Positions 3,949-22,505 of a stretch of DNA of 32,995 nucleotides are shown here, one piece after another. Positions within the stretch are counted from its first letter, which is position 1; each line of letters opens with the position of its first letter. Both the position numbers and the translations under genes were made by a program. A model generated the notes under the pieces. It saw only the letters and a program-made list of their open reading frames with translations. It was not told the DNA's origin and did no database searches. The DNA is taken from the sequence record NC_030884.1; one strand, 5' to 3'.

Positions 3949-4266
3949 ATGGAATTTGAAGATTTAGATGTAGTTCTATATGTATTTTTTGAAAATCAAG
4001 AAATGAAAAGTTTTGAATTTGAATTTAAAGAATTATTTGAAATTACTGAAAATGGATTAAGATATCTTGTAGGAGTTCCAGATTCAAGAAATAAAATCAA
4101 GAGTAATAGCGAAATTATTGAAGAATTTATATATTATCAGAATGATAATATTGTTATTAAGTTGACATTTTATTATACTAAAGACACGAATAAAATTTAT
4201 ATAAGAAAAATTTACGGTTGGAGAGAGAAAAGATCAGAATCTGAGAATGAAGAAGACAATATTTAA
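3949..4266 (+). CDS. AcrID1-family paralog (105 aa)
   Basis: MEFEDLDVVLYVFFENQEMK..FEITENGLRYLV..FYYTKDTNKIYIRKIYGWR aligns with AcrID1 start, middle and end. Confidence 0.8.
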   Translation: MEFEDLDVVLYVFFENQEMKSFEFEFKELFEITENGLRYLVGVPDSRNKIKSNSEIIEEFIYYQNDNIVIKLTFYYTKDTNKIYIRKIYGWREKRSESENEEDNI

Positions 4267-4287: not shown

Positions 4288-5220
4288 TTATTCTTCTAAT
4301 TCAATTTCCAAATCATTATTACTTTTCTTTATATTTTGTGGCTTATTTTTCTTTATTTCACTTGCAATTTTATAGTTTTGAATTATCTCATTAACTAGAC
4401 TATCTAGTCCCATTTTTTTTAATTTCTTAGCATATATCGTATATTTATTTTCAATATTCCAATTATTATATTTTAAAATCCAAGCATTTATAGTTTGTAA
4501 AATTTTTACATTTGAAAGATCATATTCAAATGGAAAATTTGTCTTATCTAAAAATTCATATAATAGTTCTTCTTCTTCTTTTGTTAATGTTCTTTTTTTT
4601 CTATCGCCTACATATCTTCTAGAACCATCAAACCAAAAGATCTCTCTGAAACCTGAAATTCTTGTATAAGTTGAAGTATCCATAGAATTAGCATTATCAA
4701 AAGTTTGGAGAAAATATGGAGCAGACATTCCTAGAACATGAAGTTTTTTTGTGTATTTTCTTAGATAATAATACCAAGGAAATGTATAGATTAAAATTTT
4801 TAATTTACTAGATGCAATTATTCCGCCAAATGCTATATAATCAGTGTATTGTTTATAAAAATCTAAGGCTTCATCTACTTCTCTAATTGGATATAAATGT
4901 ATAACTGGGATAATTCTTTCTATATATTCAATTTTAGTATATAGATATTCGAAATATTCGAAATTCTTTCTATTTAATGGTTCAAAAATAGATGGAATAT
5001 CAAGAGAAAAAAATGCATAAGCATTATATGTTTTATATTTTTCTAATACATCTTTTACTGAAATTTTCAAATTGTAAAGGCTAATTTGATAACCGCCACT
5101 GTCAACCCAAGTTTCATTTTTCCAAGTTATTTTTTTGTTATGTAATTGATTAATCAAAACTGGAAAATTTGTCTTGAGTAATAGTTCTTTTGATGATGTT
5201 ATTTCAAATACTAATTTCAT
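4288..5220 (-). CDS. tRNA-guanine transglycosylase-like (TGT/DpdA-like) protein
   Basis: TGT motifs DSGGYQ, SLDIP, IIPVIH, IAFGG, HVLGMS, SMDTS; no CxCxxC zinc motif. Confidence 0.85.
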   Translation of the reverse strand: MKLVFEITSSKELLLKTNFPVLINQLHNKKITWKNETWVDSGGYQISLYNLKISVKDVLEKYKTYNAYAFFSLDIPSIFEPLNRKNFEYFEYLYTKIEYIERIIPVIHLYPIREVDEALDFYKQYTDYIAFGGIIASSKLKILIYTFPWYYYLRKYTKKLHVLGMSAPYFLQTFDNANSMDTSTYTRISGFREIFWFDGSRRYVGDRKKRTLTKEEEELLYEFLDKTNFPFEYDLSNVKILQTINAWILKYNNWNIENKYTIYAKKLKKMGLDSLVNEIIQNYKIASEIKKNKPQNIKKSNNDLEIELEE

Positions 5221-5228
5221 ATAACTTT

Positions 5229-6428
5229 CTATTTTGGTATGACATTTATTTTATTTCTTCTTAATAAGTATACTATAGATCCTATTATTGGTATTATTAT
5301 AATTCTTAATATTGTATCTTCTATATTTCCAGAGATTACAAATTTATAAAATATTGGATTTTGATATCCTAAGTAGAAGAATAGAAATATCTGAATTGCT
5401 AAAGATGTTAGAACTATAGAAAATAATTTTTTATCATTCATGAGTTTCAAATATGCAAATGCTACAATTATGAAATTCCAGAAGATGAACAATAAACCAT
5501 CAAGTCCAAAAGATATATTAAATCCAAGTAGATTTTCTAGAACATTTGCTATTGTTTCTGTCGCAAAAATCAATAATAAAATATTTGGATTTATTTTGCT
5601 AAATGTTTCAGGTAATACTTTATCGAAACTCATAGTTTGAATTAATCTACTTTGGATTTTATTTGCAATTGGCATGTAACTAAAGAACCAAATTGGCATT
5701 AATGCAAACAATATTGACAAATTTGAATAGCTATCTAGAATTGAAAGTATCACGACTACTAAATAGCTTACAAAATATCCGACCATACTAGATTTTTTAA
5801 TATTTTTTATTTCTCCAGCTATGTAACTGATTGCATTTATGAATATAAACGCTGATAAATCAAATAGTAATGCAGATAATAAAGTATTAGAAATTGTGAA
5901 GTTTTGATATTGAAAATTAAATGATTTAAAAACTATAAATAATGCTACTATTATTTGTGCAATTGCTAATATATCAACAATTTTTGCATATATTCTCTTA
6001 TTAGCGATAATTAGTAAAACAATAGGAAATAAAGATTCAACAATTAGAAATTGTTCAAATTGATTTTGAATATTAAAGTTTAAGAGTACAAGATCACCTA
6101 AGATTGGTTGAGATAGTACATATGTTAACCATAATGAAATTCCAAAAATTGTAAAGAATTTTGAAGAAAATGCAGTTCTAATATATGCATAATCACCGCC
6201 ATTAAGTGGATATTTTGTTGTTAAACGATAATACATTAATAATAGTGGAATTTCAAATACTGCTCCAATTAAAATTGCGTATAATAAGTTAACATTTTTT
6301 AGCAAACTACTGACAAATAATGGATAACTTATCCCGCTTAAAATTCCTATATAGAGAAGATTTATTGAAAAAATATCTAGGATATTAAATGATTTTACAA
6401 TTCCAGAACTTTTTCTTTCAAGTTCCAT
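5229..6428 (-). CDS. APC-superfamily (amino-acid permease-like) membrane transporter
   Basis: About 11-12 hydrophobic segments; YYRLTTKYPLNGGDYAYIRTAFS matches the APC loop motif (P..GGdYvY....f). Confidence 0.85.
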   Translation of the reverse strand: MELERKSSGIVKSFNILDIFSINLLYIGILSGISYPLFVSSLLKNVNLLYAILIGAVFEIPLLLMYYRLTTKYPLNGGDYAYIRTAFSSKFFTIFGISLWLTYVLSQPILGDLVLLNFNIQNQFEQFLIVESLFPIVLLIIANKRIYAKIVDILAIAQIIVALFIVFKSFNFQYQNFTISNTLLSALLFDLSAFIFINAISYIAGEIKNIKKSSMVGYFVSYLVVVILSILDSYSNLSILFALMPIWFFSYMPIANKIQSRLIQTMSFDKVLPETFSKINPNILLLIFATETIANVLENLLGFNISFGLDGLLFIFWNFIIVAFAYLKLMNDKKLFSIVLTSLAIQIFLFFYLGYQNPIFYKFVISGNIEDTILRIIIIPIIGSIVYLLRRNKINVIPK

Positions 6429-6471
6429 AAGCTCTTGTGCAGTTTAAGACATAAATAAAGACTCAAAACTA

Positions 6472-6489
6472 ATACATAATATAATGTAT
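6472..6489. promoter_or_regulatory. Palindromic element ATACATAATATAATGTAT upstream of the transporter/TGT operon
   Basis: Member of the ATACATwATATwATGTAT family (also 11525, 20747 and partial sites). Confidence 0.6.
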
Positions 6490-6664
6490 ATGATGTCTCC
6501 TTTTTGTAAGTAAAACTTCATTAAATTCTTATTGACAATAACAAAATTTTTTTATATAAATTTCATAGCAAGTAAATCAAACCATATACATTATATAATA
6601 TATATGATATATAGCTTTAGAAATAAGTTGATAAAAAAAAGAAAATATCTTTAATTTGGTTTTT

Positions 6665-6859: not shown

Positions 6860-6882
6860 TTATGACATTTTTATATCTTTTT
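6860..6882 (-). promoter_or_regulatory. GTC-type promoter of svtR, embedded in the rep 3' end
   Basis: AAAAAGATATAAAAATGTCATAA identical to 7665..7687 and 10093..10115. Confidence 0.75.
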
Positions 6883-7219
6883 TTGTCTTTATCATATATT
6901 TATATACATTTTTTATATCACTTATATTTTTTGGAATTAATTCGATTCTTATATCAGTATGAGGAGGCATATGTTTGTGAACTCTAGAATAATCCAGTTT
7001 TTTATTCGTGAAAACTAAAATATGATAATGAAGACCATTTGAATTTTTTGTGGTTTCCTTTATAGAAAATACATGTGAATTTTTGTCATGATTATAAATA
7101 TAACTACGAAATTTTTTAAAAATTTTTTCAGTATCTCCATATTTATAATTAGTTGCAATAGTAATGAAATAAGTATAAGTATAAGAAAAATGAAAATTTA
7201 AAACTTTTTTCAAATCCAC
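6860..7219 (-). CDS. rep: HUH-family Rep endonuclease (119 aa from GTG 7219)
   Basis: Motif 1 FITI, motif 2 LHYHIL, motif 3 YKYMIK; matches recalled SIRV ORF119; the 192-aa track call is an over-extension. Confidence 0.9.
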   Translation of the reverse strand: MDLKKVLNFHFSYTYTYFITIATNYKYGDTEKIFKKFRSYIYNHDKNSHVFSIKETTKNSNGLHYHILVFTNKKLDYSRVHKHMPPHTDIRIELIPKNISDIKNVYKYMIKTKKDIKMS

Positions 7220-7320
7220 AATATTACGTGCGGAAATGACGTTTAAAAACTTATGTCGACAGAAAGGCGAAAGGTTTAAAAATGTATAATCACAAATTTT
7301 TATAAGCGAGGTGGCTAGAG

Positions 7321-7587
7321 ATCCAGCGTAGAAAGTATATATGCCTAAGAGTTCCAAGTGAAGTAAAACAAATTTTTTACGAAAAAAGAGAAGAGATAAA
7401 AAAACAATTAGATGATATTTTAGAAGGAAAAAGAACACTAGAAATTAAAGAAACTGCAGATTTATATGATGAAAAAGTATTCTTTACAGTAGATATGTTA
7501 TATTATGCGAAATTGCAAGAATTATCAAAAAAATATAAAAAACCATTATCGAAAATAATCAGATCTGTATTCTTTAATCTAAGTTAA
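7321..7587 (+). CDS. Cryptic tandem RHH-like protein (~88 aa) lacking a canonical start codon
   Basis: Stop-free frame 7306..7587: IQRRKYICLRVPSEVKQIFYEKREEIKKQLDDILEG..EKVFFTVDMLYYAKLQELSKKYKKPLSKIIRSVFFNLS; SD-like GAGGTG 7308..7313; T-rich tract after stop. Confidence 0.6.
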   Translation: MQRRKYICLRVPSEVKQIFYEKREEIKKQLDDILEGKRTLEIKETADLYDEKVFFTVDMLYYAKLQELSKKYKKPLSKIIRSVFFNLS

Positions 7588-7714: not shown

Positions 7715-8110
7715 ATGGCGTCCCTTAAACAAATACTGGATGAATTAGGAAAACAAGCTAAAGAACAAAACAAGATAGCTAGTAGAATTTTAAAGATAAA
7801 GGGAATAAAAAGAATTGTTGTACAATTAAATGCGGTTCCACAGAATGGTTCAATAAGATATTCAATGACAATCCATAGTCAAAACAATTTCAGGAAACAA
7901 ATTGGAATAACGCCACAAGACGCAGAAGATTTAAAATTGATTGCAGAGTTTCTAGAGAAATATGCAGACTTTCTTAATGAATATGTAAAGTTTACTCCAA
8001 GGAATAATAGCACAGTTCAAGAAGAAGAACTAGACATGGAGCAACAAGAAGAAAAAGAAGAAAAACCTAGTACGAAAAGCAGAAAGAAGAACGTAGAGGA
8101 GGAGTTTTAA
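7715..8110 (+). CDS. Single-stranded DNA-binding protein (SIRV ORF131 family)
   Basis: Matches recalled SIRV2 gp17 family; acidic low-complexity C-tail ending VEEEF typical of SSB partner-binding tails; first gene of the operon. Confidence 0.8.
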   Translation: MASLKQILDELGKQAKEQNKIASRILKIKGIKRIVVQLNAVPQNGSIRYSMTIHSQNNFRKQIGITPQDAEDLKLIAEFLEKYADFLNEYVKFTPRNNSTVQEEELDMEQQEEKEEKPSTKSRKKNVEEEF

Positions 8111-8135
8111 AACGTCATAAAGTCATTTTTTTTTC

Positions 8136-9458
8136 ATGAATGAAACTACACAACAGAATCTTCAATTATTTGAAAAGTTAAAAAGTCATTCTTTTTTTTA
8201 TAATCCAAGAGATAATGAAAGAATTTTAAGTCTAATTCTTGGCGAAAAACAAGTTGAAGAAAATAAGAAAATTGAGATTTTGAAAGCTTACAAGAGAGGA
8301 ATTGATTCTCAATATTTTAGTGCTAATTTGCCATATTATAACGAAATAAAATTTATAAGTAAAATTACTGGATTTAAAGTTAAAGATGATCTAGTAATTG
8401 CAAAATTTCAAAATGGTTTTACTGGAGATTTTGATCCACATGAAATTGCTGATAATCCAGATGATTTTTATAATCTTATTTCTTCATATATGTTTGTAAA
8501 GATCAAAAAAGGATCAGAAAACTGGTTTATTGATGAAATATTTTCTATAGAACCGCCTAATAATTTTGAAATTGCAAAAGAAATTCTAGAAGAAGCTGAT
8601 AAACAACATTTAACTTATGCTATTCTATTGCAAGCTTTTGGATATGATTCACAAAAGATGGATTCAGATGATATTTTCTTAACTTTACCACGATTATTCC
8701 CACTTTTCAAATCTCCAATTACTAAAAGACAGATAAACACAATAGAAATTTCAAATAGAGGTACTGGAAAAACTACAACATTTATGATTTTACAAGAAGT
8801 TTTCAATTTTCGTTATTATACAGAACCTCCAACTTATGCAAATTTGATCTATGATGCTAGAAATAATATGTACGGTTCAGTATTTTTATCAAACGGATTA
8901 ATTTTTGACGAAATACAAACTTGGAAAGATGGATATGCAGTTAAAGAATTAAATTCTATAAATTCTACATTATCTACTGGAATTGAAAATTGCATTTGGA
9001 CAAGAGGAGCAGGTACAGAAAGTAAATCTGCTACAATTCAAAAATGTATTCCAATTATTTATGCTGGAAATCCTTTCTCTTTAACTTTAGATAAATATCA
9101 AACTCCAGATATAGAATCATATTTACAACAATATGAAATTTTTACGCCGGCAATTTTAGATAGAATTCATATTATTCAATTAGCAATTAAGAAAACTTAT
9201 GATAAAATAATAAATGCTAGAGTTCTTTATCCTTCAATTCTAAGAGCATTAGTGGAATTAATTCAGGAAAAAATTAACAGAACTACAAATTATGCGGACT
9301 GTGGAAATCTAGAAAGTAGAAGAAAAGAACAATCTATAGATATTCAAATACTTTTACAAGCTTTAGATATAGATTTGCAAATTGGAAAAGTTTCAAATGA
9401 AGAAGTATGTAATAAAATTGTAAATCTAATGAGATTTAGCAATTTAGGAGGATGGTGA
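8136..9458 (+). CDS. AAA+/P-loop ATPase (SIRV ORF436/440; annealing/helicase-like)
   Basis: Walker A SNRGTGKT, Walker B LIFDE, sensor AGNP, arginine-finger-like ILDRI. Confidence 0.88.
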
Positions 9459-10075
9459 AAATGAATTATGAAGATCATATAAAAGAAAGTTTTAAAGTTA
9501 AATATCCTAGTGATACAATTTTTCCAAGTGAAGTTGGTATTTGTTATAGAAAAAGCTATCTTGCTAGAAATATTGAATTTGAGAGAGGAATAAATGAAAT
9601 TTATCTTGATCTAGGAGAACAATATCATGAGAGAATTGAACAATATTTTAAAGAAAAATTGAATTGTCAAACTGAAGTTGAAATTAAAGATGAAGTTGAG
9701 GGAATGAAAATTAGCGGTAGAATTGATATAATTTGTAATAATGACTTATTGGAAATTAAAACAATTAGTTATAATTATTTCCAAGTAAAAGAATATCATT
9801 TATACCAAGTCGCATTATATTATCATATTTTGAAAAAGCAAAATTATCAAATCAATAATGTATATATTATATATTTAAATAGAAACACTAGAGAAGTTAA
9901 GCAATTTAAAATTGATGAAAAAGTTTTAGAAAATTATTATCAAAAAGTTATTGAATGGATAAAGAAATTTAAAGAATATCTAAAAGAAACAGATTATAAA
10001 AAAGTTCCAGGAGTTAATAATTATATCTGTAAATCTTGTGAGTTTAAGCAAAAATGCATTATATCACTTTTTTAA
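9452..10075 (+). CDS. Cas4-like RecB-family nuclease
   Basis: [31 protein letters not shown] and C-terminal [10 protein letters not shown] Fe-S cysteines. Confidence 0.92.
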
Positions 10076-10092
10076 TGAAAAAATAGAAGAGT

Positions 10093-10115
10093 AAAAAGAT
10101 ATAAAAATGTCATAA
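10093..10115 (+). promoter_or_regulatory. GTC-type promoter of the ORF81-RHH operon
   Basis: Identical 23-mer AAAAAGATATAAAAATGTCATAA. Confidence 0.75.
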
Positions 10116-10138
10116 TATAAAATGTAAAAATAGAGAAC

Positions 10139-10384
10139 ATGAGTCAAGTAGAAGAAGTCATAAAAAGTTTAAATAAAAAAGATATAAAAGATATAATAAC
10201 TAAAAATATTAATTTTTTAGTAGAACCACAAATTCTATTTTATGCAAAAAAGAGAAATAGGATAGTAGGATATCTAGAAATCAATAATAAACATTATCGT
10301 TTTGAATTGATATTTAGCAAAGATAATAGCGTAAGTATAACAGTTGGAGAAATAATAGTTTTCGGGAGCAGTGATTTGAAATGA
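10139..10384 (+). CDS. Conserved rudiviral hypothetical protein (81 aa)
   Basis: Own promoter; stop overlaps the next start (ATGA). Confidence 0.75.
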   Translation: MSQVEEVIKSLNKKDIKDIITKNINFLVEPQILFYAKKRNRIVGYLEINNKHYRFELIFSKDNSVSITVGEIIVFGSSDLK

Positions 10385-10560
10385 TGAAGATTGTCACATT
10401 TAAAATTCCAGATGAAATGTTACTATTACTAGAGGCTTATGCTATGAAACATAAGATGAACAGGTCAGAAGTAATAAGGTTAGCAATAGAGAAATTAGTA
10501 GTAGACGAAATGAAAAATGAACCAGTTCCAAAAGCTAAAGTTGAAAAAATAAAGTTATGA
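10381..10560 (+). CDS. 59-aa ribbon-helix-helix (CopG-like) regulator
   Basis: Not in ORF track; MMKIVTFKIPDEMLLLLEAYAMKHKMNRSEVIRLAIEKLV is a classic RHH; ATGA coupling with upstream ORF. Confidence 0.88.
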   Translation: MMKIVTFKIPDEMLLLLEAYAMKHKMNRSEVIRLAIEKLVVDEMKNEPVPKAKVEKIKL

Positions 10561-10609
10561 AAAGTGCATAAAATATCCATAAAAAATAAGATATTATTTT
10601 TTTGATTTT

Positions 10610-11086
10610 TTAATCATTTTTTGCTAAAGTTACTCCTTTTTGACCTTGATATTTTCCGTTATATGGCTTTTCGACTGGCGTTATAGTTCTTGCAAAAATT
10701 AAGTGTAAAAATCTTTCTCCTGTTTTTAGTTTTACTGGAATTGAAGAACCAACAAGTTCTATAGTTAATTGTCCTTCAAATCCCGCATCTACTATAGTCG
10801 GCGGAATTAATAATCCTTTTCTTGCAAATGTAGATCTTAAATTGCAAAATGCTATAATATCATTTGGTAATTTTATATATTCTTTAGTTGTTAAGAGAAC
10901 ATGTTCATATGGATAAATTATAAATTCATCTCTTATTTCTTTCGTCATATTTTCTTTTATTCTAACTATTTCATTTCCAATTTTTAAGTCTACTCCATTT
11001 TCTCTAATTGTATCCTCACTTAAAGGTTCAATTACAAGTCTATTTAAATTTATATATCTTTTTATATCTCTATCTGATAAAATCAT
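10610..11086 (-). CDS. dut: dUTPase (trimeric dUTPase/dCTP deaminase fold)
   Basis: [49 protein letters not shown] motifs. Confidence 0.93.
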
Positions 11087-11092
11087 CTTTTC

Positions 11093-11404
11093 TCAGTTCT
11101 TATTTTCAGTTTCTGACATATTTATTTCTCCACAAATTACTGAGATTTTAAACATATTTCTATCATATCTCCAATTTACTTTTATATAATTTGGATATTT
11201 GAAAGTATGAACTAAATATTTTAAGATAGACATTCCAATTTTTTCGTATTCTTTCTTCTTCATATTTATTTTTATTTGTATTAATATTATTTCTTCATCT
11301 TCAAAAACATTAAAGAAATAAATATTGTCAGAGTATCTACTTTCTAACCAATTTCGAAATTGAATTATATATTTTCTACACTCATTCTTTATATCAATTT
11401 CCAT
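11093..11404 (-). CDS. Conserved hypothetical protein (103 aa), co-transcribed with dut
   Basis: 6-nt gap to dut; GTC-type promoter at ~11421..11433(-). Confidence 0.75.
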   Translation of the reverse strand: MEIDIKNECRKYIIQFRNWLESRYSDNIYFFNVFEDEEIILIQIKINMKKKEYEKIGMSILKYLVHTFKYPNYIKVNWRYDRNMFKISVICGEINMSETENKN

Positions 11405-11523
11405 ATTTTAGTTAGAACAATATGACAATTTAATAGTTTTTCGTATTCTATGATATAGTCTATGATATAATATATAATCTCCGAAATTATTTTCATATTA
11501 TTTTTTGCAAATGTTAAACGTGA

Positions 11524-11543
11524 TATACATAATATTATGTATA
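11524..11543. promoter_or_regulatory. Perfect 20-bp palindrome upstream of the capsid gene
   Basis: TATACATAATATTATGTATA, flanked by ACGTGA direct repeats. Confidence 0.7.
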
Positions 11544-11592
11544 AGACGTGAAAATTTATTAATTTCAAATCATTAATTGTAATTGACCAAAT

Positions 11593-11997
11593 ATGGCAAA
11601 AGGCAGAACGCCAAGAAGTTATTCACAAAGGTACGCGAAATGGCAAGCTAAATTTAACGCATTTTCTAATCCAACAGTCGCTAGTACTATATTGTCAAAT
11701 GTAGCTCCAGTTGCCCAACAAAATTTCCAGACTAATGTACCTAAGTTTACCGCGATAAATGAAAATGTTAGTGCAGTATTATCACAATATGGAATAACTG
11801 GTCCTAACAGGGCAGTTTATCAAGGTTTTGCATTAAAGATAGCTAGAGCACTTAATAGGATTGGTGGTGGCCCGGCATTAGTAAATATGATTAGCGGTTT
11901 GAAAGCATATTATATTTCAGCCTTTAACGCAAATCCACAAGTTCTTGACGCTGTAGTTAATATTATAACTGGAAGCCCAACTGGATATGTAAGTTAA
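11593..11997 (+). CDS. Major capsid (DNA-wrapping) protein, 134 aa
   Basis: MAKGRTPRSYSQRYAKWQAKFNAFSNPTVASTILSNV..SPTGYVS matches the recalled rudiviral MCP. Confidence 0.97.
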   Translation: MAKGRTPRSYSQRYAKWQAKFNAFSNPTVASTILSNVAPVAQQNFQTNVPKFTAINENVSAVLSQYGITGPNRAVYQGFALKIARALNRIGGGPALVNMISGLKAYYISAFNANPQVLDAVVNIITGSPTGYVS

Positions 11998-12027
11998 AAT
12001 ATTTAAGCTATTTTTTTCTTTTTTTCT

Positions 12028-12195
12028 TTATTCTTCTTCAGCCTTTATTTCTATATATTCTCCAGTTCTTAAACTTATCCTTCTACAATTAGATAATTTT
12101 AAATTTTTATTATGCTTTCTTAAATGAGTAACCATACTTTTTCTTTTTATATAAATTTTTCCACAAATTGGGCATTCATATCCTAAAAGTGCCAT
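12028..12195 (-). CDS. 55-aa C2H2 zinc-finger protein (from ATG 12195)
   Basis: YECPICGKIYIKRKSMVTHLRKH = C-x2-C-x12-H-x3-H. Confidence 0.85.
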   Translation of the reverse strand: MALLGYECPICGKIYIKRKSMVTHLRKHNKNLKLSNCRRISLRTGEYIEIKAEEE

Positions 12196-12327
12196 AGCGA
12201 TAAATTTGGATTTGACATTTTTAAATGCTATTAAATCCAATCAACCATATACATTATATTTATTATATGAATTATAGGTTAAGTTATCAGTCAGCTTTAT
12301 TTTTGTCATAATTTTTAGATTTCAATT

Positions 12328-13335
12328 ATGAAAACTGCAATTTTAACTATGAATTATTCTTCTATATCAAATGTTTCAGAAGATATAGCTGAAGTATTAA
12401 GAGAAAATGGAGAAATTGCGACAATAACAAAAAATCCATATTATATTCCAAAAGCTGAAAAATTGATCATTTTTATACCATTCCATCCGCCATCTCTAAA
12501 TCCATATCTTTATGCTTTTTATCAATTTCAAGGAAAGAAATTATTTTATACAACTTGTGATGGAATTCCAAATATTGAAATTGTTAACAAGTATTTATTA
12601 CAAGATGTTAAATTTATACCAAATTCAAAATTTTCCGCCATAAATCTTCAGGAAGTAGGATTACAGGTCGATTTGCCAGTTTTTCATGGAATTAATTTTA
12701 AAATTGTAGAAAATGCCGAAAAATTAGTTTCACAAATGAGACAAAAATTAGATAAAGATTTTCCAAATAGTATAAAATTTGGAATTGTTAGTGGATTGAC
12801 AAAAAGGAAAAATATGGATTTAATGTTACAAGTTTTTAATGAACTAAATACTAAATATCCAGATATAGCTAAGAAAATCCACTTTTTCGTAATTTCTCAT
12901 AAACAGTTTACTCAATATGAAGTTCCACAAAATGTTCATTTTGTTGCGGAATTTGGATATAATTCCAGGGAATATATATTTGCATTCTATGGAGCTATGG
13001 ATTATGTTATTGTTCCTAGTGGGACTGAAGGATTTGGAATGCCAGTTCTAGAAAGTATGAGTATGGGAACTCCAGTTATCCATCAATTAATGCCTCCTTT
13101 TGATGAATTTACAAGTTGGCAATGGAATTTACTAATTAAATCTTCTAGAGTTGAGGAATATTATGATAAGGAACATGGACAAAAATGGAAAATTCATAAA
13201 TTTGAAATTGAAGATATGACAAATGCAATTATATTAGCTACAGAATTACAAGATAGAGAAGAAAGAAGTGTTAAATTAAAAGAATTAGCAAAAAGATATG
13301 ATATTAGAAATTTATATACTAGATTCTTAGAATAG
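12328..13335 (+). CDS. Glycosyltransferase, GT-B/GT4-like (335 aa)
   Basis: KRKN, VPSGTEGFGMPVLESMSMGTPVI (EX7E motif). Confidence 0.93.
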   Translation: MKTAILTMNYSSISNVSEDIAEVLRENGEIATITKNPYYIPKAEKLIIFIPFHPPSLNPYLYAFYQFQGKKLFYTTCDGIPNIEIVNKYLLQDVKFIPNSKFSAINLQEVGLQVDLPVFHGINFKIVENAEKLVSQMRQKLDKDFPNSIKFGIVSGLTKRKNMDLMLQVFNELNTKYPDIAKKIHFFVISHKQFTQYEVPQNVHFVAEFGYNSREYIFAFYGAMDYVIVPSGTEGFGMPVLESMSMGTPVIHQLMPPFDEFTSWQWNLLIKSSRVEEYYDKEHGQKWKIHKFEIEDMTNAIILATELQDREERSVKLKELAKRYDIRNLYTRFLE

Positions 13336-13377
13336 TATAAATTTGTCATAATACATAATATATAATAGTGATAGGAC

Positions 13378-13518
13378 GTGAAGCTAAAAATAATATGCGA
13401 AAAACTAACGACATTTCATGTAAATTCTGAAGATCAAGAATTAATAGATAGAATAATAAAAATGTGTAATGATTATAATTTAAATTATAAAATTGAATTT
13501 GAATATAATAAGAAGTGA
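13378..13518 (+). CDS. 46-aa hypothetical protein
   Basis: Not in track; GTG start, MKLKIICEKLTTFHVNSEDQELIDRIIKMCNDYNLNYKIEFEYNKK; GTC-type promoter at ~13336..13349; stop abuts the next gene's SD. Confidence 0.6.
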   Translation: MKLKIICEKLTTFHVNSEDQELIDRIIKMCNDYNLNYKIEFEYNKK

Positions 13519-13523
13519 TAAAA

Positions 13524-13718
13524 ATGATATTTTATCAATATGATGAAAAAGATAAAACATTACATGTTAAGATTTATCTGCTTATAGAACAAGTTCCAAA
13601 TAAACCAACAGAAGAACAATTAAGAAAAGTATTGCCAAAAATTCTAAGAGATTATGCAAATATGATAGAAAATGGAAAAATAAAAATTATAGATAGTAAT
13701 GAATGGGGCACTTGGTAA
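13524..13718 (+). CDS. Conserved rudiviral 64-aa protein (from ATG 13524)
   Basis: GTG 13515 looks like SD sequence; convergent with the TM/coiled-coil gene. Confidence 0.7.
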   Translation: MIFYQYDEKDKTLHVKIYLLIEQVPNKPTEEQLRKVLPKILRDYANMIENGKIKIIDSNEWGTW

Positions 13719-13726
13719 AAAAAATT

Positions 13727-13954
13727 TTATTTTTCATCTAACTTTCTTTTTATTTCTTCAACTTGTCTTGATAATTCATCTTGTTTTATTTTTAATTCTT
13801 CAATTTCTGTCTTTAGATTTGATAATTCTGAATTTACTATCTCTTTTACTGCATCTTTTAATGCTTGTTTAATTTTTAAATATAGTTGAACAATTGCAAA
13901 TAATGTAGTTACAGTTGTAGAAAATAATGCAAATGTTAGAGTAAGATCACTCAT
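13727..13954 (-). CDS. 75-aa N-terminal transmembrane + coiled-coil protein
   Basis: ATG 13954 after purine-rich GAGGAAAGTGAAG; hydrophobic LTLTFALFSTTVTTLFAIVQLYL followed by heptads. Confidence 0.8.
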   Translation of the reverse strand: MSDLTLTFALFSTTVTTLFAIVQLYLKIKQALKDAVKEIVNSELSNLKTEIEELKIKQDELSRQVEEIKRKLDEK

Positions 13955-14279
13955 CTTCACTTTCCTCCTCAGATAATTCAAAATTTGCAGTACTATTAAT
14001 TTGTTTCGCGTAAGGTTGAGGATAAACCACGCGAAAATCATCTATAAAAATTTGCTTAGTTTGTTGATCTTGAATTATAGAAAATTGAAAATAAAAAGTA
14101 AATCCAGGAATATATAAATCTACAATAAGCGGATAATCAATAGTTTTCATTACAATTATTGAATTTGGTAAAAAACGCGATAAACCATAAATTTGACCTC
14201 TCTGTTCAAGTTCACGAATTTTATCTATCGCAATTCTAACAACTCCAAAAATATTTTGAAAAGGATCTTCAATTTTCAT
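13947..14279 (-). CDS. Conserved hypothetical protein (110 aa)
   Basis: 8-nt overlap with the downstream gene; palindrome-family element upstream at 14326..14351. Confidence 0.78.
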   Translation of the reverse strand: MKIEDPFQNIFGVVRIAIDKIRELEQRGQIYGLSRFLPNSIIVMKTIDYPLIVDLYIPGFTFYFQFSIIQDQQTKQIFIDDFRVVYPQPYAKQINSTANFELSEEESEDE

Positions 14280-14368
14280 ATGATATCTTTTATCTCAAGC
14301 CGTTAAAAAATATACAAGTAGCATAATACATATATATTATATAATGTATATAGTGTTTAGATTTTGTG

Positions 14369-15757
14369 TTATCTGACTGCAATATTTTGAAAGTTTTTAT
14401 AATGGAAAATTGGCTTATATTGTTTCGTTTTTGCAGATTTTTGAGCTAATTTTATCTGATTCTCAATTTTTGCCTGTCCTTGTAATTGTTCTCCTAATTG
14501 TTGTGCAAATTGCAAATCTTGATCTGAAATGCCATAAAATTTCCACTTAGTTTTCCAATAATTCAAAAATTCTTGATATGATAATGTTCTTTTTCCAGAT
14601 GTATAACTGTAATTTTGTTGGTAAGGATATCTTGCAATTTCTATAGTAGCACTTGCTACCATTTTCGCGTACCAAATATTTGCATATTTCTTATTGACAA
14701 TTTTTTGAACTTGTAAAAATTGCTCATATGTAACTGCATAGTTTTCAATTTCTGAACTATAAGCTATATTTGTACCGCCTGGAGAAGGATCATATAAATG
14801 CATTTTGAATAGATTTCCAAATATCGAAATTACAGTTTTATCTGCGGATAGAATTGCTATTAGGTCATCTTGAGTTACATTTTCTGGATTAAAATCAGGC
14901 ATTAATACGGCAAAATCAAGAGGAGTATAATCTAAAATCATTCCAAAAACATCTGCAAAATATTGTAAAATCATACCATTTTGTAATTGAATTCCATCTT
15001 GAGTTTCTGGAGCTAAAACACATCTATCTAACCAACCGACATCTAAAGCAAAACCACTATTAATTATACTATTTAAGTCTGGAATAAATGCAATTATGAA
15101 TTTGGCAAAATCTGGAAGTTGATTAAAATTGATATTTAAAGCATTTAACAAATCTGAAATACCAGTATCTGCAATATTATTATATATATAGTTATCTACA
15201 TTTGGAATATTTGTACTACCAATTCCTAAAGTTGTAACATCAACACTGACATTTGCAGTAGTTAAACTAGAAAAAGATTGTTCAATTTTCTGACAAGATT
15301 GATTTTGATATTCTGTAGCTAATGCCGGCTGATATACAGATAAATCAAAATAAGTTTCATCAAAAACTGCCGGTTGATACAAAACTGAACATAATTGTAC
15401 ATAATTATCATATAAACTAGTATAATTATTTAATAAACTTATTCCATTTGAAGTACCAAAATTTGCAGATTGACCTAAATTAAGAAATGTTTGAGAATTA
15501 AAATTAGGATTAAAAGTTGAACTTGCTAGATTATTTAATGCAGAAAGTAAAGAAGAAACAATTGAAGCATATGCAATTCCATAATTTGTATTTATTCCTG
15601 GAGGAATTTGAATATTCTCTAATGGAGTCGGCAAAACTGAAGAAACTCCAGCGTCAAACATTACAGAAAATGCGGGAAAAGATTTTCTATTCAATATTTT
15701 ATTATACAAGTGATATTTCATAGCTGAAATATTTCTTTGACCTTTCCTTTTTCCCAT
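14369..15757 (-). CDS. Minor virion structural protein (SIRV ORF486/488 family); start probably MGKRK at 15757
   Basis: Long ORF in the recalled syntenic position; the upstream extension to 15853 overlaps the divergent promoter, so start is uncertain. Confidence 0.75.
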   Translation of the reverse strand: MGKRKGQRNISAMKYHLYNKILNRKSFPAFSVMFDAGVSSVLPTPLENIQIPPGINTNYGIAYASIVSSLLSALNNLASSTFNPNFNSQTFLNLGQSANFGTSNGISLLNNYTSLYDNYVQLCSVLYQPAVFDETYFDLSVYQPALATEYQNQSCQKIEQSFSSLTTANVSVDVTTLGIGSTNIPNVDNYIYNNIADTGISDLLNALNINFNQLPDFAKFIIAFIPDLNSIINSGFALDVGWLDRCVLAPETQDGIQLQNGMILQYFADVFGMILDYTPLDFAVLMPDFNPENVTQDDLIAILSADKTVISIFGNLFKMHLYDPSPGGTNIAYSSEIENYAVTYEQFLQVQKIVNKKYANIWYAKMVASATIEIARYPYQQNYSYTSGKRTLSYQEFLNYWKTKWKFYGISDQDLQFAQQLGEQLQGQAKIENQIKLAQKSAKTKQYKPIFHYKNFQNIAVR

Positions 15758-15843
15758 AACTATCAATTTATATACCTCAACTAGAAAAATAAACTTACAA
15801 ATTGCATAATGTATATAAATGTCATACATTATTGAGTTAATAA

Positions 15844-16308
15844 ATGAATCCAAAATATGAAGTTGAAGAAGTAAAAAATAAAGAATTAATAAAATTAGTA
15901 AGAATGTTAATTGACTATTATCATATTCAGGGAATGGTAAAAGGCGGTGGAGCTGGAAGAAATAGTAGATATTTTATATATCTTCAAAAAGAAGAAGACA
16001 AGAAATATATTGTAGCAGTAGCTTGGTTACACGATAATACACCATTCCGTTTTATTGCACAACAATATAATATTCCAAACGACAGATCTTATTTTATTAG
16101 AAGAGTTACAAAAACTGCTCCAGGAGATCATTTAGTGAATTTTCTAAATGATTTATCTGAGAAATTGAAGAATGACGGTTTTGAAGTTCTATGGACTTTA
16201 GGACTACCAGATCATAGTAACGCTTTATACAAGAAAGCTGGATTTAAATTAGTAGGACAAACTAGTAGGACAAAACATGAAGTTTATGTAAAATATCTAA
16301 ATAAGTGA
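15844..16308 (+). CDS. GNAT-family acetyltransferase
   Basis: FIRRV..PG and NALYKKAGFKLVG (GNAT motif B-like). Confidence 0.8.
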   Translation: MNPKYEVEEVKNKELIKLVRMLIDYYHIQGMVKGGGAGRNSRYFIYLQKEEDKKYIVAVAWLHDNTPFRFIAQQYNIPNDRSYFIRRVTKTAPGDHLVNFLNDLSEKLKNDGFEVLWTLGLPDHSNALYKKAGFKLVGQTSRTKHEVYVKYLNK

Positions 16309-20746: not shown

Positions 20747-20764
20747 ATACATTATATAATGTAT
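20747..20764. promoter_or_regulatory. Perfect 18-bp palindrome ATACATTATATAATGTAT
   Basis: Upstream of the minor structural genes; a 16-bp direct copy TCATATACATTATATA also lies at 20685..20700. Confidence 0.7.
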
Positions 20765-20807: not shown

Positions 20808-22505
20808 ATGCCTTTGCCATACAAGATGAGTTACAAATTACCGTTAGAATATCTATCATTACAAGACTGGAACAACTTTGTTCAGAATTTAATATTTATA
20901 AATCAATACGGTACAGCTAAATTATTACAATATTATCAAAATGGTAATTTTCAAAATCTAAAAGATGTATTTGCAAAATATTTATATGTAGCACAATTGA
21001 AAGTTAATGGATATAATGTATTATATAATTTGGCAAAACCACTAGCGTATACTTTTGGAAATGTTTTTCAAGAACTCGCAAATAGACCTACCGTCGAATT
21101 ATCTGAAGTTATTGTTCCGCCTCCTTCACTTAGCTATAATATAAATTATAAATTACCAACTATAAAAAAGCAAATAGAAGTATTAATTCCTAATTTAATT
21201 TCTAAAATTGTAATTCCTAACGTCATAGCCGGCACACAATTTATATTTTCTGGAAATTCGAATTTAGCACAACTAACATCTCAATATTTACAATCTGGAT
21301 ATCTTCAAACTTGGAGAAGTATAACATTACAAAATTTAGGAAATAATTCAATTCAAATAAATAATTCGATTTATTTAATGCCTAAACAATGTTTGAAAAT
21401 TACAGTTTCAAATCCGCAAGAAGTACAAATTTCAGCACAAAATCCTACTTTGGTAAGTGAATTAATTGAATTTGGTGCAATACTAATTACTGCTTATACA
21501 ATTACAATTACAAATTCTCAACCTGATCCAACTTCAAGTCCATTTCAACAATTGCTAATTTTGAATTTATCAAACATAATTTCTAGTCCTTCACAATTAC
21601 TTAATTTACAATTTTGCTTAGATTCTCAGTGTCAAACGCCATTATATGCTTGGATTGAAAGTTATAATTCCAATTTATCAAACGTTTATATCTGGATTAA
21701 TTTACCAATTTCAATTCCCGCAAATTCTTCAATTACAATTTATATGTTTGTAAGAAATTCAATTCAATATCCTTATACTGGACTGAGATCGGATTTATCT
21801 CAGACTTATGCACAATATGATAATGGAAAAAATGTATTCTTAATTTATTTTAACGGAAATGAACCATTATCAAATTTTGATACTTTTGGAAATACAATTC
21901 AACAAATTTCTACAACTGGGCCATTAGGAAATCAAATAAATGCAATATATTTATCTGGATATTCAAATAATGTTGGATTTGTTTATATTGGAAAAAGTGT
22001 ACCAAATCAACCAGTAATTGCAGAATCTTCAACAATAGACCTAGGAAATCAAGCTGGAGGATTAGGAGCTAATAACGGTATGGCGGGAATTGCAGATAAT
22101 ACAAATACATCTTCTATAAATGCAATTGGAGTAACTATGGGATATAGTAACTCATATTTTTCTCAATCATATTATATAAATGGCAGTGAAACTAATGATT
22201 TAAATCAACAAGGTAGTGCAGTTTCACAGTGGGTTTATGCATGGGTTTATTATTACGGATCTTCAGCTAGTTCATGGTATGGATGTATAGCTCCACAATT
22301 CTATAGTTCTGCCGGCGGATATTGTGGAACAGTTAATAATAACCCACTTTCTAGTTCTACACAATTATATTTAAGTGCTATTGGTTCTGTTAGCTCAGGC
22401 TTTTGGTGGCAAACAGCTTGGAATTTCATGAGAATGAGGACTTATCCGCCTAACGGCGTAATGCCGTCTAACACAAATCCTCAATTAACTGCAATTTATA
22501 GTTAG
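20808..22505 (+). CDS. Minor virion protein (SIRV ORF562/564 family) with DUF2341-like/lectin-like C-terminal domain
   Basis: PFQQLLILNL..PLYAWIESYN..IWINLP.SIPANSSITIYM resembles DUF2341; ATG 20808 or 20826 more plausible than TTG 20793. Confidence 0.75.
   Translation: MPLPYKMSYKLPLEYLSLQDWNNFVQNLIFINQYGTAKLLQYYQNGNFQNLKDVFAKYLYVAQLKVNGYNVLYNLAKPLAYTFGNVFQELANRPTVELSEVIVPPPSLSYNINYKLPTIKKQIEVLIPNLISKIVIPNVIAGTQFIFSGNSNLAQLTSQYLQSGYLQTWRSITLQNLGNNSIQINNSIYLMPKQCLKITVSNPQEVQISAQNPTLVSELIEFGAILITAYTITITNSQPDPTSSPFQQLLILNLSNIISSPSQLLNLQFCLDSQCQTPLYAWIESYNSNLSNVYIWINLPISIPANSSITIYMFVRNSIQYPYTGLRSDLSQTYAQYDNGKNVFLIYFNGNEPLSNFDTFGNTIQQISTTGPLGNQINAIYLSGYSNNVGFVYIGKSVPNQPVIAESSTIDLGNQAGGLGANNGMAGIADNTNTSSINAIGVTMGYSNSYFSQSYYINGSETNDLNQQGSAVSQWVYAWVYYYGSSASSWYGCIAPQFYSSAGGYCGTVNNNPLSSSTQLYLSAIGSVSSGFWWQTAWNFMRMRTYPPNGVMPSNTNPQLTAIYS

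Follow-up and report, generated by a model that had tools for sequence, protein, structure and literature searches.

A permease and a zinc-less TGT-like protein form a candidate accessory operon in the rudivirus SIRV3

The window analysed here, a stretch of 32,995 nucleotides (nt) from sequence record NC_030884.1, is the complete genome of the rudivirus SIRV3 and is 100% identical to KX712143. We focus on two genes on its minus strand, a permease and, downstream of it, a gene whose product resembles the TGT transglycosylases and which we call TGTL (Table 1). The record annotates TGTL as "queuine/archaeosine tRNA-ribosyltransferase" and its neighbour as "permease transmembrane protein". In SIRV2 the orthologues are gp13/ORF310 for TGTL and gp14/ORF399 for the permease, and the permease orthologue in SIRV1 is gene 399. 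An initial annotation, made from the letters of the genome, described the two genes as lying 8 nt apart on the same strand behind a palindromic element, with the catalytic motifs of a TGT enzyme kept, its zinc motif lost and no genes for preQ0 synthesis in sight, and it proposed that they import a 7-deazaguanine or another base and insert it. All of these descriptive claims hold. As for the preQ0 genes, none appears in the record annotation, a Pfam scan of the ten largest unassigned open reading frames (ORFs) finds none, and a six-frame scan of the genome gives no match to the hallmark motifs of QueC, QueD or ArcS; the SIRV3 genome has no FolE/QueCDE, Gat-QueC, ArcS or DpdB/C with which TGTL could be associated. 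The reading that we prefer, and to which we give about an even chance of being right, is that of an accessory two-gene operon in which TGTL uses a host-made deazaguanine, with DNA the more likely target, and in which a link between permease and TGTL is not established.

Table 1. Features of the permease-TGTL locus, and further copies of its palindrome, in the SIRV3 genome (aa, amino acids; TM, transmembrane helices)
Feature	Position	Strand	Evidence or placement
TGTL, 310-aa zinc-less TGT-superfamily protein	4288..5220	minus	ORF; PHROG 887, E 3e-73
Spacer AAAGTTAT, 8 nt, from permease TAG to TGTL ATG	5221..5228	minus	Sequence
Compact 12-TM APC/LeuT-fold permease (predicted fold), 399 aa	5229..6428	minus	ORF; PHROG 8289, E 1e-194
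TATA-like box TTTATTTA	6452..6459	minus	Position and conservation; centred about 27 nt upstream of permease ATG
Palindrome TACATTATATTATGTA, 16 bp, near-perfect	6473..6488		45-60 nt upstream of permease ATG, about 10 nt upstream of TATA-like box
Second palindrome copy (one mismatch)	6587..6602		Same intergenic region, downstream of SvtR gene
Palindrome copy	11526..11541		52-67 nt upstream of coat-protein ATG (11593)
Palindrome copy	14333..14348		54-69 nt upstream of ORF 13947-14279 (minus)
Perfect palindrome copy	20748..20763		45-60 nt upstream of structural-protein gene 20808-22505

The motifs DSGGYQ (residues 40-45), LDIP (73-76) and SMDTS (179-183) of TGTL carry three aspartates, D40, D74 and D181, which are unchanged in all 36 aligned members of the family, viral and cellular. 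They align with D95, D130 and D249 of the P. horikoshii arcTGT (1IQ8), and by this alignment their roles would be those of general acid/base, base recognition and nucleophile. A stacking aromatic residue and a GG backbone motif, which also align with 1IQ8, likewise do not vary among viral and cellular members that are 25-40% identical. The predicted catalytic residues are the three aspartates and H108. This invariant histidine aligns, in alignments of hidden Markov models (HMMs), with the base-contacting histidine of Salmonella DpdA (H181 in native numbering, H201 in the 7UI4 chain), at a position where 1IQ8 has Q169. H181 of the Salmonella enzyme contacts the base, and tRNA TGTs have a glutamine there (PMC10164549).

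The identity of TGTL as a TGT rests on a profile match and on its fold. Searched directly with phmmer against the solved structures of the PDB, TGTL gives no match, and the family profile matches the catalytic domain of arcTGT (1IQ8) with an E of 9e-5. The AlphaFold2 (AF2) model, which took the family alignment as input, has a pLDDT of 90.5 and consists of one barrel with a short helical tail. Compared by Foldseek with the PDB, this model has arcTGT (E 7e-9), bacterial TGT and human QTRT1 on top, with E values from 7e-9 to 1e-6 and a probability of 1.00, at 11-14% identity to the solved TGTs. In a library of viral structures, DpdA-type proteins of phages (nt-1, phiST and actinophages) match the model at E 1e-8 to 1e-10, and the fold similarity to these is no better than to tRNA TGTs. 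By its modelled fold TGTL is a member of the TGT superfamily, and this fold does not tell a DNA from a tRNA target. Residues and fold agree with the earlier view of TGTL as a base-exchange enzyme of this superfamily with an intact catalytic triad, for which activity is predicted. We also considered TGTL as the non-catalytic N-domain of a split ArcS and rejected it: the three catalytic aspartates are invariant, and TGTL gives no match to ArcS models.

The permease had been called "APC-type", a name that stands at the level of the fold and falls short at the level of the Pfam family. The AF2 model (pLDDT 89.7, pTM 0.90) has a complete 12-TM LeuT/APC fold with a 5+5 inverted repeat, in which TM1 and TM6 are broken at residues 27-31 and 195-199. 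Foldseek matches it to AdiC, GkApcT (a CAT homologue), ApcT and LAT1, with TMq between 0.66 and 0.73, and there is no nucleobase carrier among the top 50 fold matches. The G-E-x-K-N signature of TM6 is kept, with E206 invariant. The match to Pfam AA_permease_2 has an E of 1e-4 and 21.4 bits, below the gathering cutoff of 27. A word-indexed search for homologues was saturated by close relatives, and we used instead an exhaustive profile search of 1.84 billion representatives, which gives seven relatives below 1e-30, essentially rudiviral. The next relatives are AA_permease_2 proteins of 460-550 aa, which pass the Pfam cutoff. With its loops trimmed, the SIRV3 permease is some 100 residues shorter than the cellular proteins closest to it. 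A mixed alignment that includes canonical AA_permease_2 relatives matches SLC7/BasC at E 1e-59 to 1e-46. Pfam and NCBIfam give only APC-type families for the permease, with no homology to YhhQ/QPTR (COG1738) or to the ECF S-component QueT. Among cellular relatives, one lies in an operon with an M20 peptidase, another lies with radical-SAM genes, and two are near xanthine-dehydrogenase/CODH-type operons. Sequence and model place the SIRV3 permease closest to the amino-acid and amine carriers, a type of substrate that is read from its relatives only.

The interpretation of SIRV proteins as DpdA, and the idea that the host supplies the base, are already in print. Hutinet et al. 2019, using iterated PSI-BLAST with annotations verified by HHpred, give SIRV1-11 (including NC_030884), SRV and STSV1/2 as viruses encoding DpdA homologues. 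For viruses with DpdA only they suggest, as possibilities, the use of preQ0 from the host or the uptake of precursors, and they report that some phages encode the preQ0 transporter YhhQ. In the same work Sulfolobus hosts, S. islandicus included, encode FolE, QueD, QueE, Gat-QueC and arcTGT. The transglycosylase was counted among the core genes of SIRVs by Bautista et al. 2017. Mayo-Munoz et al. 2018 report that SIRV2 gp10-gp14 were spontaneously lost during passage in CRISPR-null hosts, and that a series of SIRV2 deletions propagated like wild type until gp37 was removed. From the loss of gp10-gp14, the permease and TGTL genes are dispensable in laboratory hosts. Our literature search found no paper linking the permease to TGTL.

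Beyond the rudiviruses, homologues of TGTL at about 40% identity are chromosomal genes, found in Saccharolobus (including the SIRV host S. islandicus, and S. solfataricus), Acidianus, Stygiolobus, Sulfuracidifex, Ca. Aramenus and Conexivisphaera. Judged by sequence, TGTL belongs to a zinc-less clade specific to Sulfolobales. This is new here, as are the placing of the permease among APC carriers, the sharing of the palindrome with the coat-protein promoter and the survey of where the pair stays adjacent. At most of the informative cellular loci the TGT-like gene is adjoined, often with an overlap and in either order, by a gene for a protein of about 190 aa that consists of DUF5591 only, the catalytic core of the archaeosine synthase ArcS. 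In most Sulfolobaceae, Saccharolobus and Acidianus among them, this pair is directly followed, on the same strand, by a gene for a HerA-like ATPase of non-canonical type and by genes for a large protein of about 1000 aa, a short protein resembling SMC/Rad50, and NurA. The full cluster is seen at 8001-15888 of a Saccharolobus contig (L003), and also in contigs L006, L014-L016, L018, L131-L134 and L136. In the Saccharolobus cluster, the large protein has 1012 aa and no detectable family, and the SMC/Rad50-like protein has 229 aa. The canonical herA-mre11-rad50-nurA repair operon is rejected as an explanation of this cluster: its HerA reaches 98 bits where the Thermoproteota HerA model has its cutoff at 800, neither the 1012-aa nor the 229-aa protein matches Mre11, and Rad50 is matched only weakly, by the 229-aa protein (17.6 bits against 700). 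The cluster may be a module for DNA repair or a system of modification and restriction like Dpd. The PADLOC defence library gives no match for the SIRV3 TGTL, the SIRV3 permease, the cellular TGT-like proteins or the ArcS-core proteins. A rearranged form occurs in contig L021, labelled Thermogutta and probably mis-binned, where ArcS core and TGTL are swapped and HerA and part of the large protein are also seen. Conexivisphaera (L068) has the cluster in part: beside the ArcS core and TGTL, a DUF87 fragment and a large protein are all that is seen.

Members of the family are also found on several mobile elements. STSV1, STSV2 and STSV4 carry the pair of TGT-like and DUF5591 genes, with 67% and 62% identity to the Saccharolobus pair, and in the tree their TGT-like proteins nest inside the cellular clade, which indicates a recent capture. 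The TGTLs of rudiviruses (SIRVs, SBRV1 and SRV) form a separate monophyletic clade (support 100/99) and have no DUF5591 partner; their separate clade points to one old acquisition. TGTL lies beside ThyX and/or dUTPase in STSV2, STSV4, SRV and the contig L070. A solo TGT-like gene is present on a plasmid-like element of 37.9 kb (L135, a contig of ERZ1684502) together with Orc1/Cdc6, a TFIIB zinc-ribbon protein and a TraG/HerA-like ATPase, and this solo copy indicates that the family has spread over several kinds of Sulfolobales mobile elements. The host species of STSV, Sulfolobus tengchongensis, has a chromosomal TGT-like protein of this family (WP_338603968.1); Cui et al. 2023 reported that the STSV host encodes no proteins of the Q/G+ pathways. 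Scans of IMG/VR gave only SIRV-like and STSV contigs and no further independent lineages. Proteins 96-100% identical to the SIRV3 TGTL occur in assemblies labelled Streptomyces gamaensis, Planomonospora alba JCM 9373 (a contig of 31,951 bp), Paenochrobactrum glaciei and Nocardioides koreensis (L010-L013), where they are almost certainly contamination or a sequencing spike-in and not biology.

Upstream of the permease, the position of the TATA-like box would imply a leaderless or short-leader transcript. The US SIRVs have an equivalent box, TTAAATT, conserved in this place. The palindrome TACATWATATWATGTA occurs at five sites in the SIRV3 genome at no more than one mismatch, against 0.03 expected. 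Three of them, in front of the permease operon, the coat-protein gene and the gene at 20808 for a structural protein, have an identical layout of palindrome, gap of about 10 nt and TATA box. The palindrome is kept in SIRV1-3 only, and the US SIRVs retain only the TATA-like box. Kessler et al. 2006 used three SIRV1 promoters as bait, those of gene 56, of the coat-protein gene 134 and of gene 399, which encodes the permease orthologue, and with them isolated from extracts the winged-helix activator Sta1 of the host. Its footprints are 16-bp imperfect inverted repeats (consensus ATNT-N8-WNAT) that lie within the core promoter and some 30 nt upstream. The SIRV3 palindrome fits this consensus when read as ATAT-ACATTATA-TTAT. 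It is probably a site for a dimeric regulator of the host Sta1 type, and its copies probably mark a regulon of that type. Since copies precede the coat-protein and structural genes, the palindrome appears as a shared promoter module, not particular to the permease-TGTL operon.

How the two genes travel bears on the proposal that they form one system, in which the permease would bring in an unusual base from outside, either a 7-deazaguanine derivative or some other, for TGTL to insert into viral DNA. The spacing is tight throughout the SIRVs: the 8 nt of SIRV3 become, in US SIRVs and metagenomic relatives, a 2-nt gap, a TAATG overlap (-1) or an ATGA overlap (-4), and it is almost certain from this spacing that the pair shares a transcript, as the initial annotation had supposed. 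Both genes are present in every SIRV-like contig with enough flank, the collection searched holds no rudivirus with TGTL but no permease, and SIRV2MII has lost both genes together. Adjacency is also kept where the arrangement has changed. In SRV the two genes are adjacent but convergent, with overlapping 3' ends. Contig L070 (1-3813; JGI 3300029921, GC content 43%) has four genes in a row, for ThyX (its end only), dUTPase, TGT-like protein and a permease of 483 aa, so that the order of the pair is reversed, with the permease start overlapping the TGT-like stop. The L070 dUTPase is 58% identical to that of SIRV3, the L070 permease shares 42% identity with a cellular homologue (L065), and the L070 TGT-like protein is the closest outgroup of the rudiviral clade; by its gene content this contig looks like a virus-like nucleotide-metabolism module. 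Across the three arrangements (SIRVs, SRV and L070) the proteins are 25-39% identical.

The co-inheritance expected by the initial annotation extends over all SIRV-like contigs sampled, but in several lineages the two genes are uncoupled. In SBRV1 some 5 kb separates them and they are on opposite strands. TGTL is missing from SSRV1 and ARV2, which have the permease, and the permease is missing from STSV1, STSV2, STSV4 and the plasmid-like elements, which have TGTL. No permease homologue is found within 8-10 kb of a cellular TGTL at any of about 30 informative loci. Descent alone can explain adjacency within one virus family. The host, moreover, makes preQ0 and has G+ in its tRNA, so that with its full pathway uptake is not needed, and the relatives of the permease in sequence and fold are amino-acid and amine carriers, one of them in the M20 peptidase operon. 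On the other side, uptake was raised in print for DpdA-only phages, some phages carry YhhQ, and two cellular relatives of the permease lie near operons of the xanthine-dehydrogenase type. We regard import coupled to insertion as unlikely, and place it first among the alternatives; what speaks for scavenging through a transporter of the virus's own is the adjacency in three arrangements. That the permease feeds TGTL is possible, unproven and weakly supported.

Our preferred reading of an accessory operon that draws on the host can be put as a series of steps. The TATA box and the 16-bp palindrome upstream of it would drive a single permease-TGTL transcript, to judge from the spacing, the overlaps in relatives and the conservation of the promoter. 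Host Sta1 probably binds the palindrome module, as it would before the coat-protein gene and another structural gene. TGTL, a minimal enzyme with no zinc, should then exchange guanine for a 7-deazaguanine base, as its fold and residues suggest. This base would most likely be preQ0 or a close derivative, made by the host. The target is most likely viral DNA, in which infrequent modification would serve as an anti-defence mark; pointing to DNA are the dCDG of STSV2, the DpdA-type histidine, the lack of tRNA-binding domains and the neighbours in DNA metabolism and anti-defence. The STSV2 TGTL is of the same family as that of SIRV3 and about 40% identical to it, and Cui et al. 2023 report dCDG in STSV2 DNA. 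The permease is most likely an auxiliary carrier of nutrients or amines, of the amino-acid/polyamine type.

Several points weigh against this reading. The closest solved relative of TGTL by sequence is a tRNA enzyme, arcTGT, and the same family profile matches Salmonella DpdA (7UI4) at an E of 0.15, which is not significant. Pfam TGT (PF01702) gives no match to TGTL at E <= 1, and none is precomputed for any homologue. The SIRV3 TGTL has no cysteine, and the zinc motif CxCxxC is found in 0 of 36 family members. The initial annotation had taken this loss as pointing away from tRNA TGTs, but it does not point to DpdA: the zinc site CxCx2Cx22H is reported to be conserved in DpdA as well as in TGTs (PMC10164549), so that its absence throughout the TGTL family points away from canonical DpdA as much as from tRNA TGTs. 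The argument from H108 is one of a single aligned residue in weak HMM alignments. The dCDG of STSV2 amounts to 0.04% of G, a very low level whose origin and chemistry its authors left unexplained, and the searchable literature reports no modified base in any SIRV DNA. Activation by Sta1 was shown by Kessler et al. 2006 for SIRV1 promoters 56 and 134, not for 399. Finally, given the adjacency in three arrangements, treating the permease as independent may be wrong.

A wider and speculative reading starts from the cellular cluster. Sulfolobales chromosomes may carry a Dpd-like system that marks DNA as "self" by a 7-deazaguanine, made up of the TGT-like transglycosylase, the ArcS-core amidotransferase, the HerA-like ATPase, the protein of about 1000 aa, the SMC/Rad50-like protein and NurA. 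Rudiviruses, STSV-type viruses and plasmid-like elements would use an orphan TGTL to stamp their own DNA with the mark of the host, and the rudiviral APC permease would belong to this counter-defence, for instance as the source of the base or of a co-substrate. Taken jointly, these parts make a reading that we hold doubtful and rank behind coupled import.

An enzyme directed at tRNA is improbable, and we place it lower again. TGTL would here be a stripped-down arcTGT that raises or alters the 7-deazaguanine in host tRNA during infection, and the permease would be unrelated to it. In its favour, arcTGT is the best match among solved structures both in sequence and in fold, public annotations call the protein a tRNA-ribosyltransferase, and the partner of the cellular relatives is the catalytic core of ArcS, which is an enzyme of tRNA. 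However, TGTL lacks the zinc subdomain, and the PUA and C-terminal C1-C3 domains that recognise tRNA are absent from its 310 aa, with no nearby ORF as a split partner. NCBIfam TgtA (TIGR00432) does not match the SIRV3 TGTL, and a cellular homologue reaches 19 bits where the cutoff is 350. A canonical arcTGT and Gat-QueC are already present in the host, TGTL has the DpdA-type histidine where tRNA TGTs have glutamine, the neighbours of viral TGTLs are DNA-precursor genes, and it is in DNA that deazaguanine was found in the relative STSV2.

Least probable of all is that TGTL has drifted to a role other than with 7-deazaguanine or to a non-catalytic one (such as binding or excising another base), the pair being two unrelated accessory genes kept by synteny: the very high divergence (no Pfam match, no zinc site, 11-14% identity to solved TGTs), the dispensability in culture and the purifying selection on all SIRV core clusters, described as relaxed (Pn/Ps < 1; Bautista et al. 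2017), would fit, but the rudiviral clade is old and monophyletic and the three aspartates, the stacking aromatic and the GG motif are invariant in viruses and cells, which argues for a maintained enzymatic function.

As for the surroundings of the operon, the ORF at 3949-4266 (plus strand), the convergent neighbour of TGTL, bears the RefSeq label of an AcrID1-family anti-CRISPR protein and is a homologue of SIRV2 gp10. An AcrID1-family gene adjoins TGTL in SIRV2 as well as in SIRV3. This neighbour, together with the loss of gp10-gp14 as one block in SIRV2, places the permease-TGTL operon in the anti-defence or accessory arm of the genome. On the far side of the permease, the ORF at 6860-7438 (minus strand) is annotated with 192 aa from a GTG start. 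Its sole recognisable domain (Pfam "117-like_vir", Rep ORF2-G2P-like) spans residues 85-185, its SIRV2 counterpart is ORF119c, and its N-terminal extension is probably an annotation artefact.

If TGTL does mark DNA, 7-deazaguanine modification of DNA would extend to crenarchaeal viruses by way of a minimal, zinc-free transglycosylase. SIRV2 is a model archaeal virus, no DNA base modification has been demonstrated for it or its relatives, and the label "DpdA" now stands on a dozen archaeal virus genomes. Compared with the known DpdA proteins (bDpdA and DpdA1-4), TGTL has the same TIM-barrel TGT fold, the three catalytic aspartates and a histidine at the base-contacting position. Like them it is carried by viruses and has no tRNA-binding modules, Hutinet et al. 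2019 file the SIRV proteins as "DpdA only, host supplies preQ0", and a family member, that of STSV2, is associated with dCDG in DNA. It differs from DpdA in lacking the CxCx2Cx22H site, in having neither DpdB/DpdC partners nor preQ0 genes beside it, in the non-significant profile match to 7UI4, and in its much shorter length, 310 aa where Salmonella DpdA has about 416 aa (the chain of 7UI4, with 436 aa, appears to carry about 20 extra N-terminal residues). The rudiviral TGTL is known, moreover, from sequence and model, with its activity predicted. With arcTGT (1IQ8/1J2B) it shares the best match in sequence and in fold, and the motifs DSGxxQ, LDIP, GG and D-x-S align; it differs in the missing zinc site and C1-C3/PUA domains, in the histidine at Gln169, in lying far below the TgtA cutoff, and in that the host has its own arcTGT.

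On the side of the permease, the APC transporters AdiC, GkApcT, ApcT and SLC7/LAT share with it a 12-TM LeuT fold (TM-score about 0.7), unwound TM1 and TM6, G-E-x-K-N and the link through the AA_permease_2 profile, whereas the SIRV3 protein is shorter by about 100 residues, scores below the Pfam cutoff and belongs to a family almost confined to rudiviruses. YhhQ/QPTR (COG1738) and the ECF S-components QrtT/QueT, some of them encoded by phages, offer the same concept, a viral transporter beside an enzyme that inserts deazaguanine, but have no relation in sequence or fold to the APC-fold permease of SIRV3. The true closest family of TGTL is the Sulfolobales chromosomal pair of TGT-like and DUF5591 ("ArcS2") proteins, about 40% identical, with the same invariant residues and likewise no zinc site. 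If TGTL marks DNA, this chromosomal TGT-like and ArcS-core pair would give the puzzle of dCDG in STSV2 a counterpart in the host. The most interesting lead, a speculative one, is the host TGT-like/ArcS-core/HerA/NurA cluster as a possible self-marking system that is mimicked by orphan viral copies. In the chromosomal copies and in those of STSV1/2/4, an ArcS-core gene accompanies the TGT-like gene, whereas the rudiviral copies stand with a permease instead.

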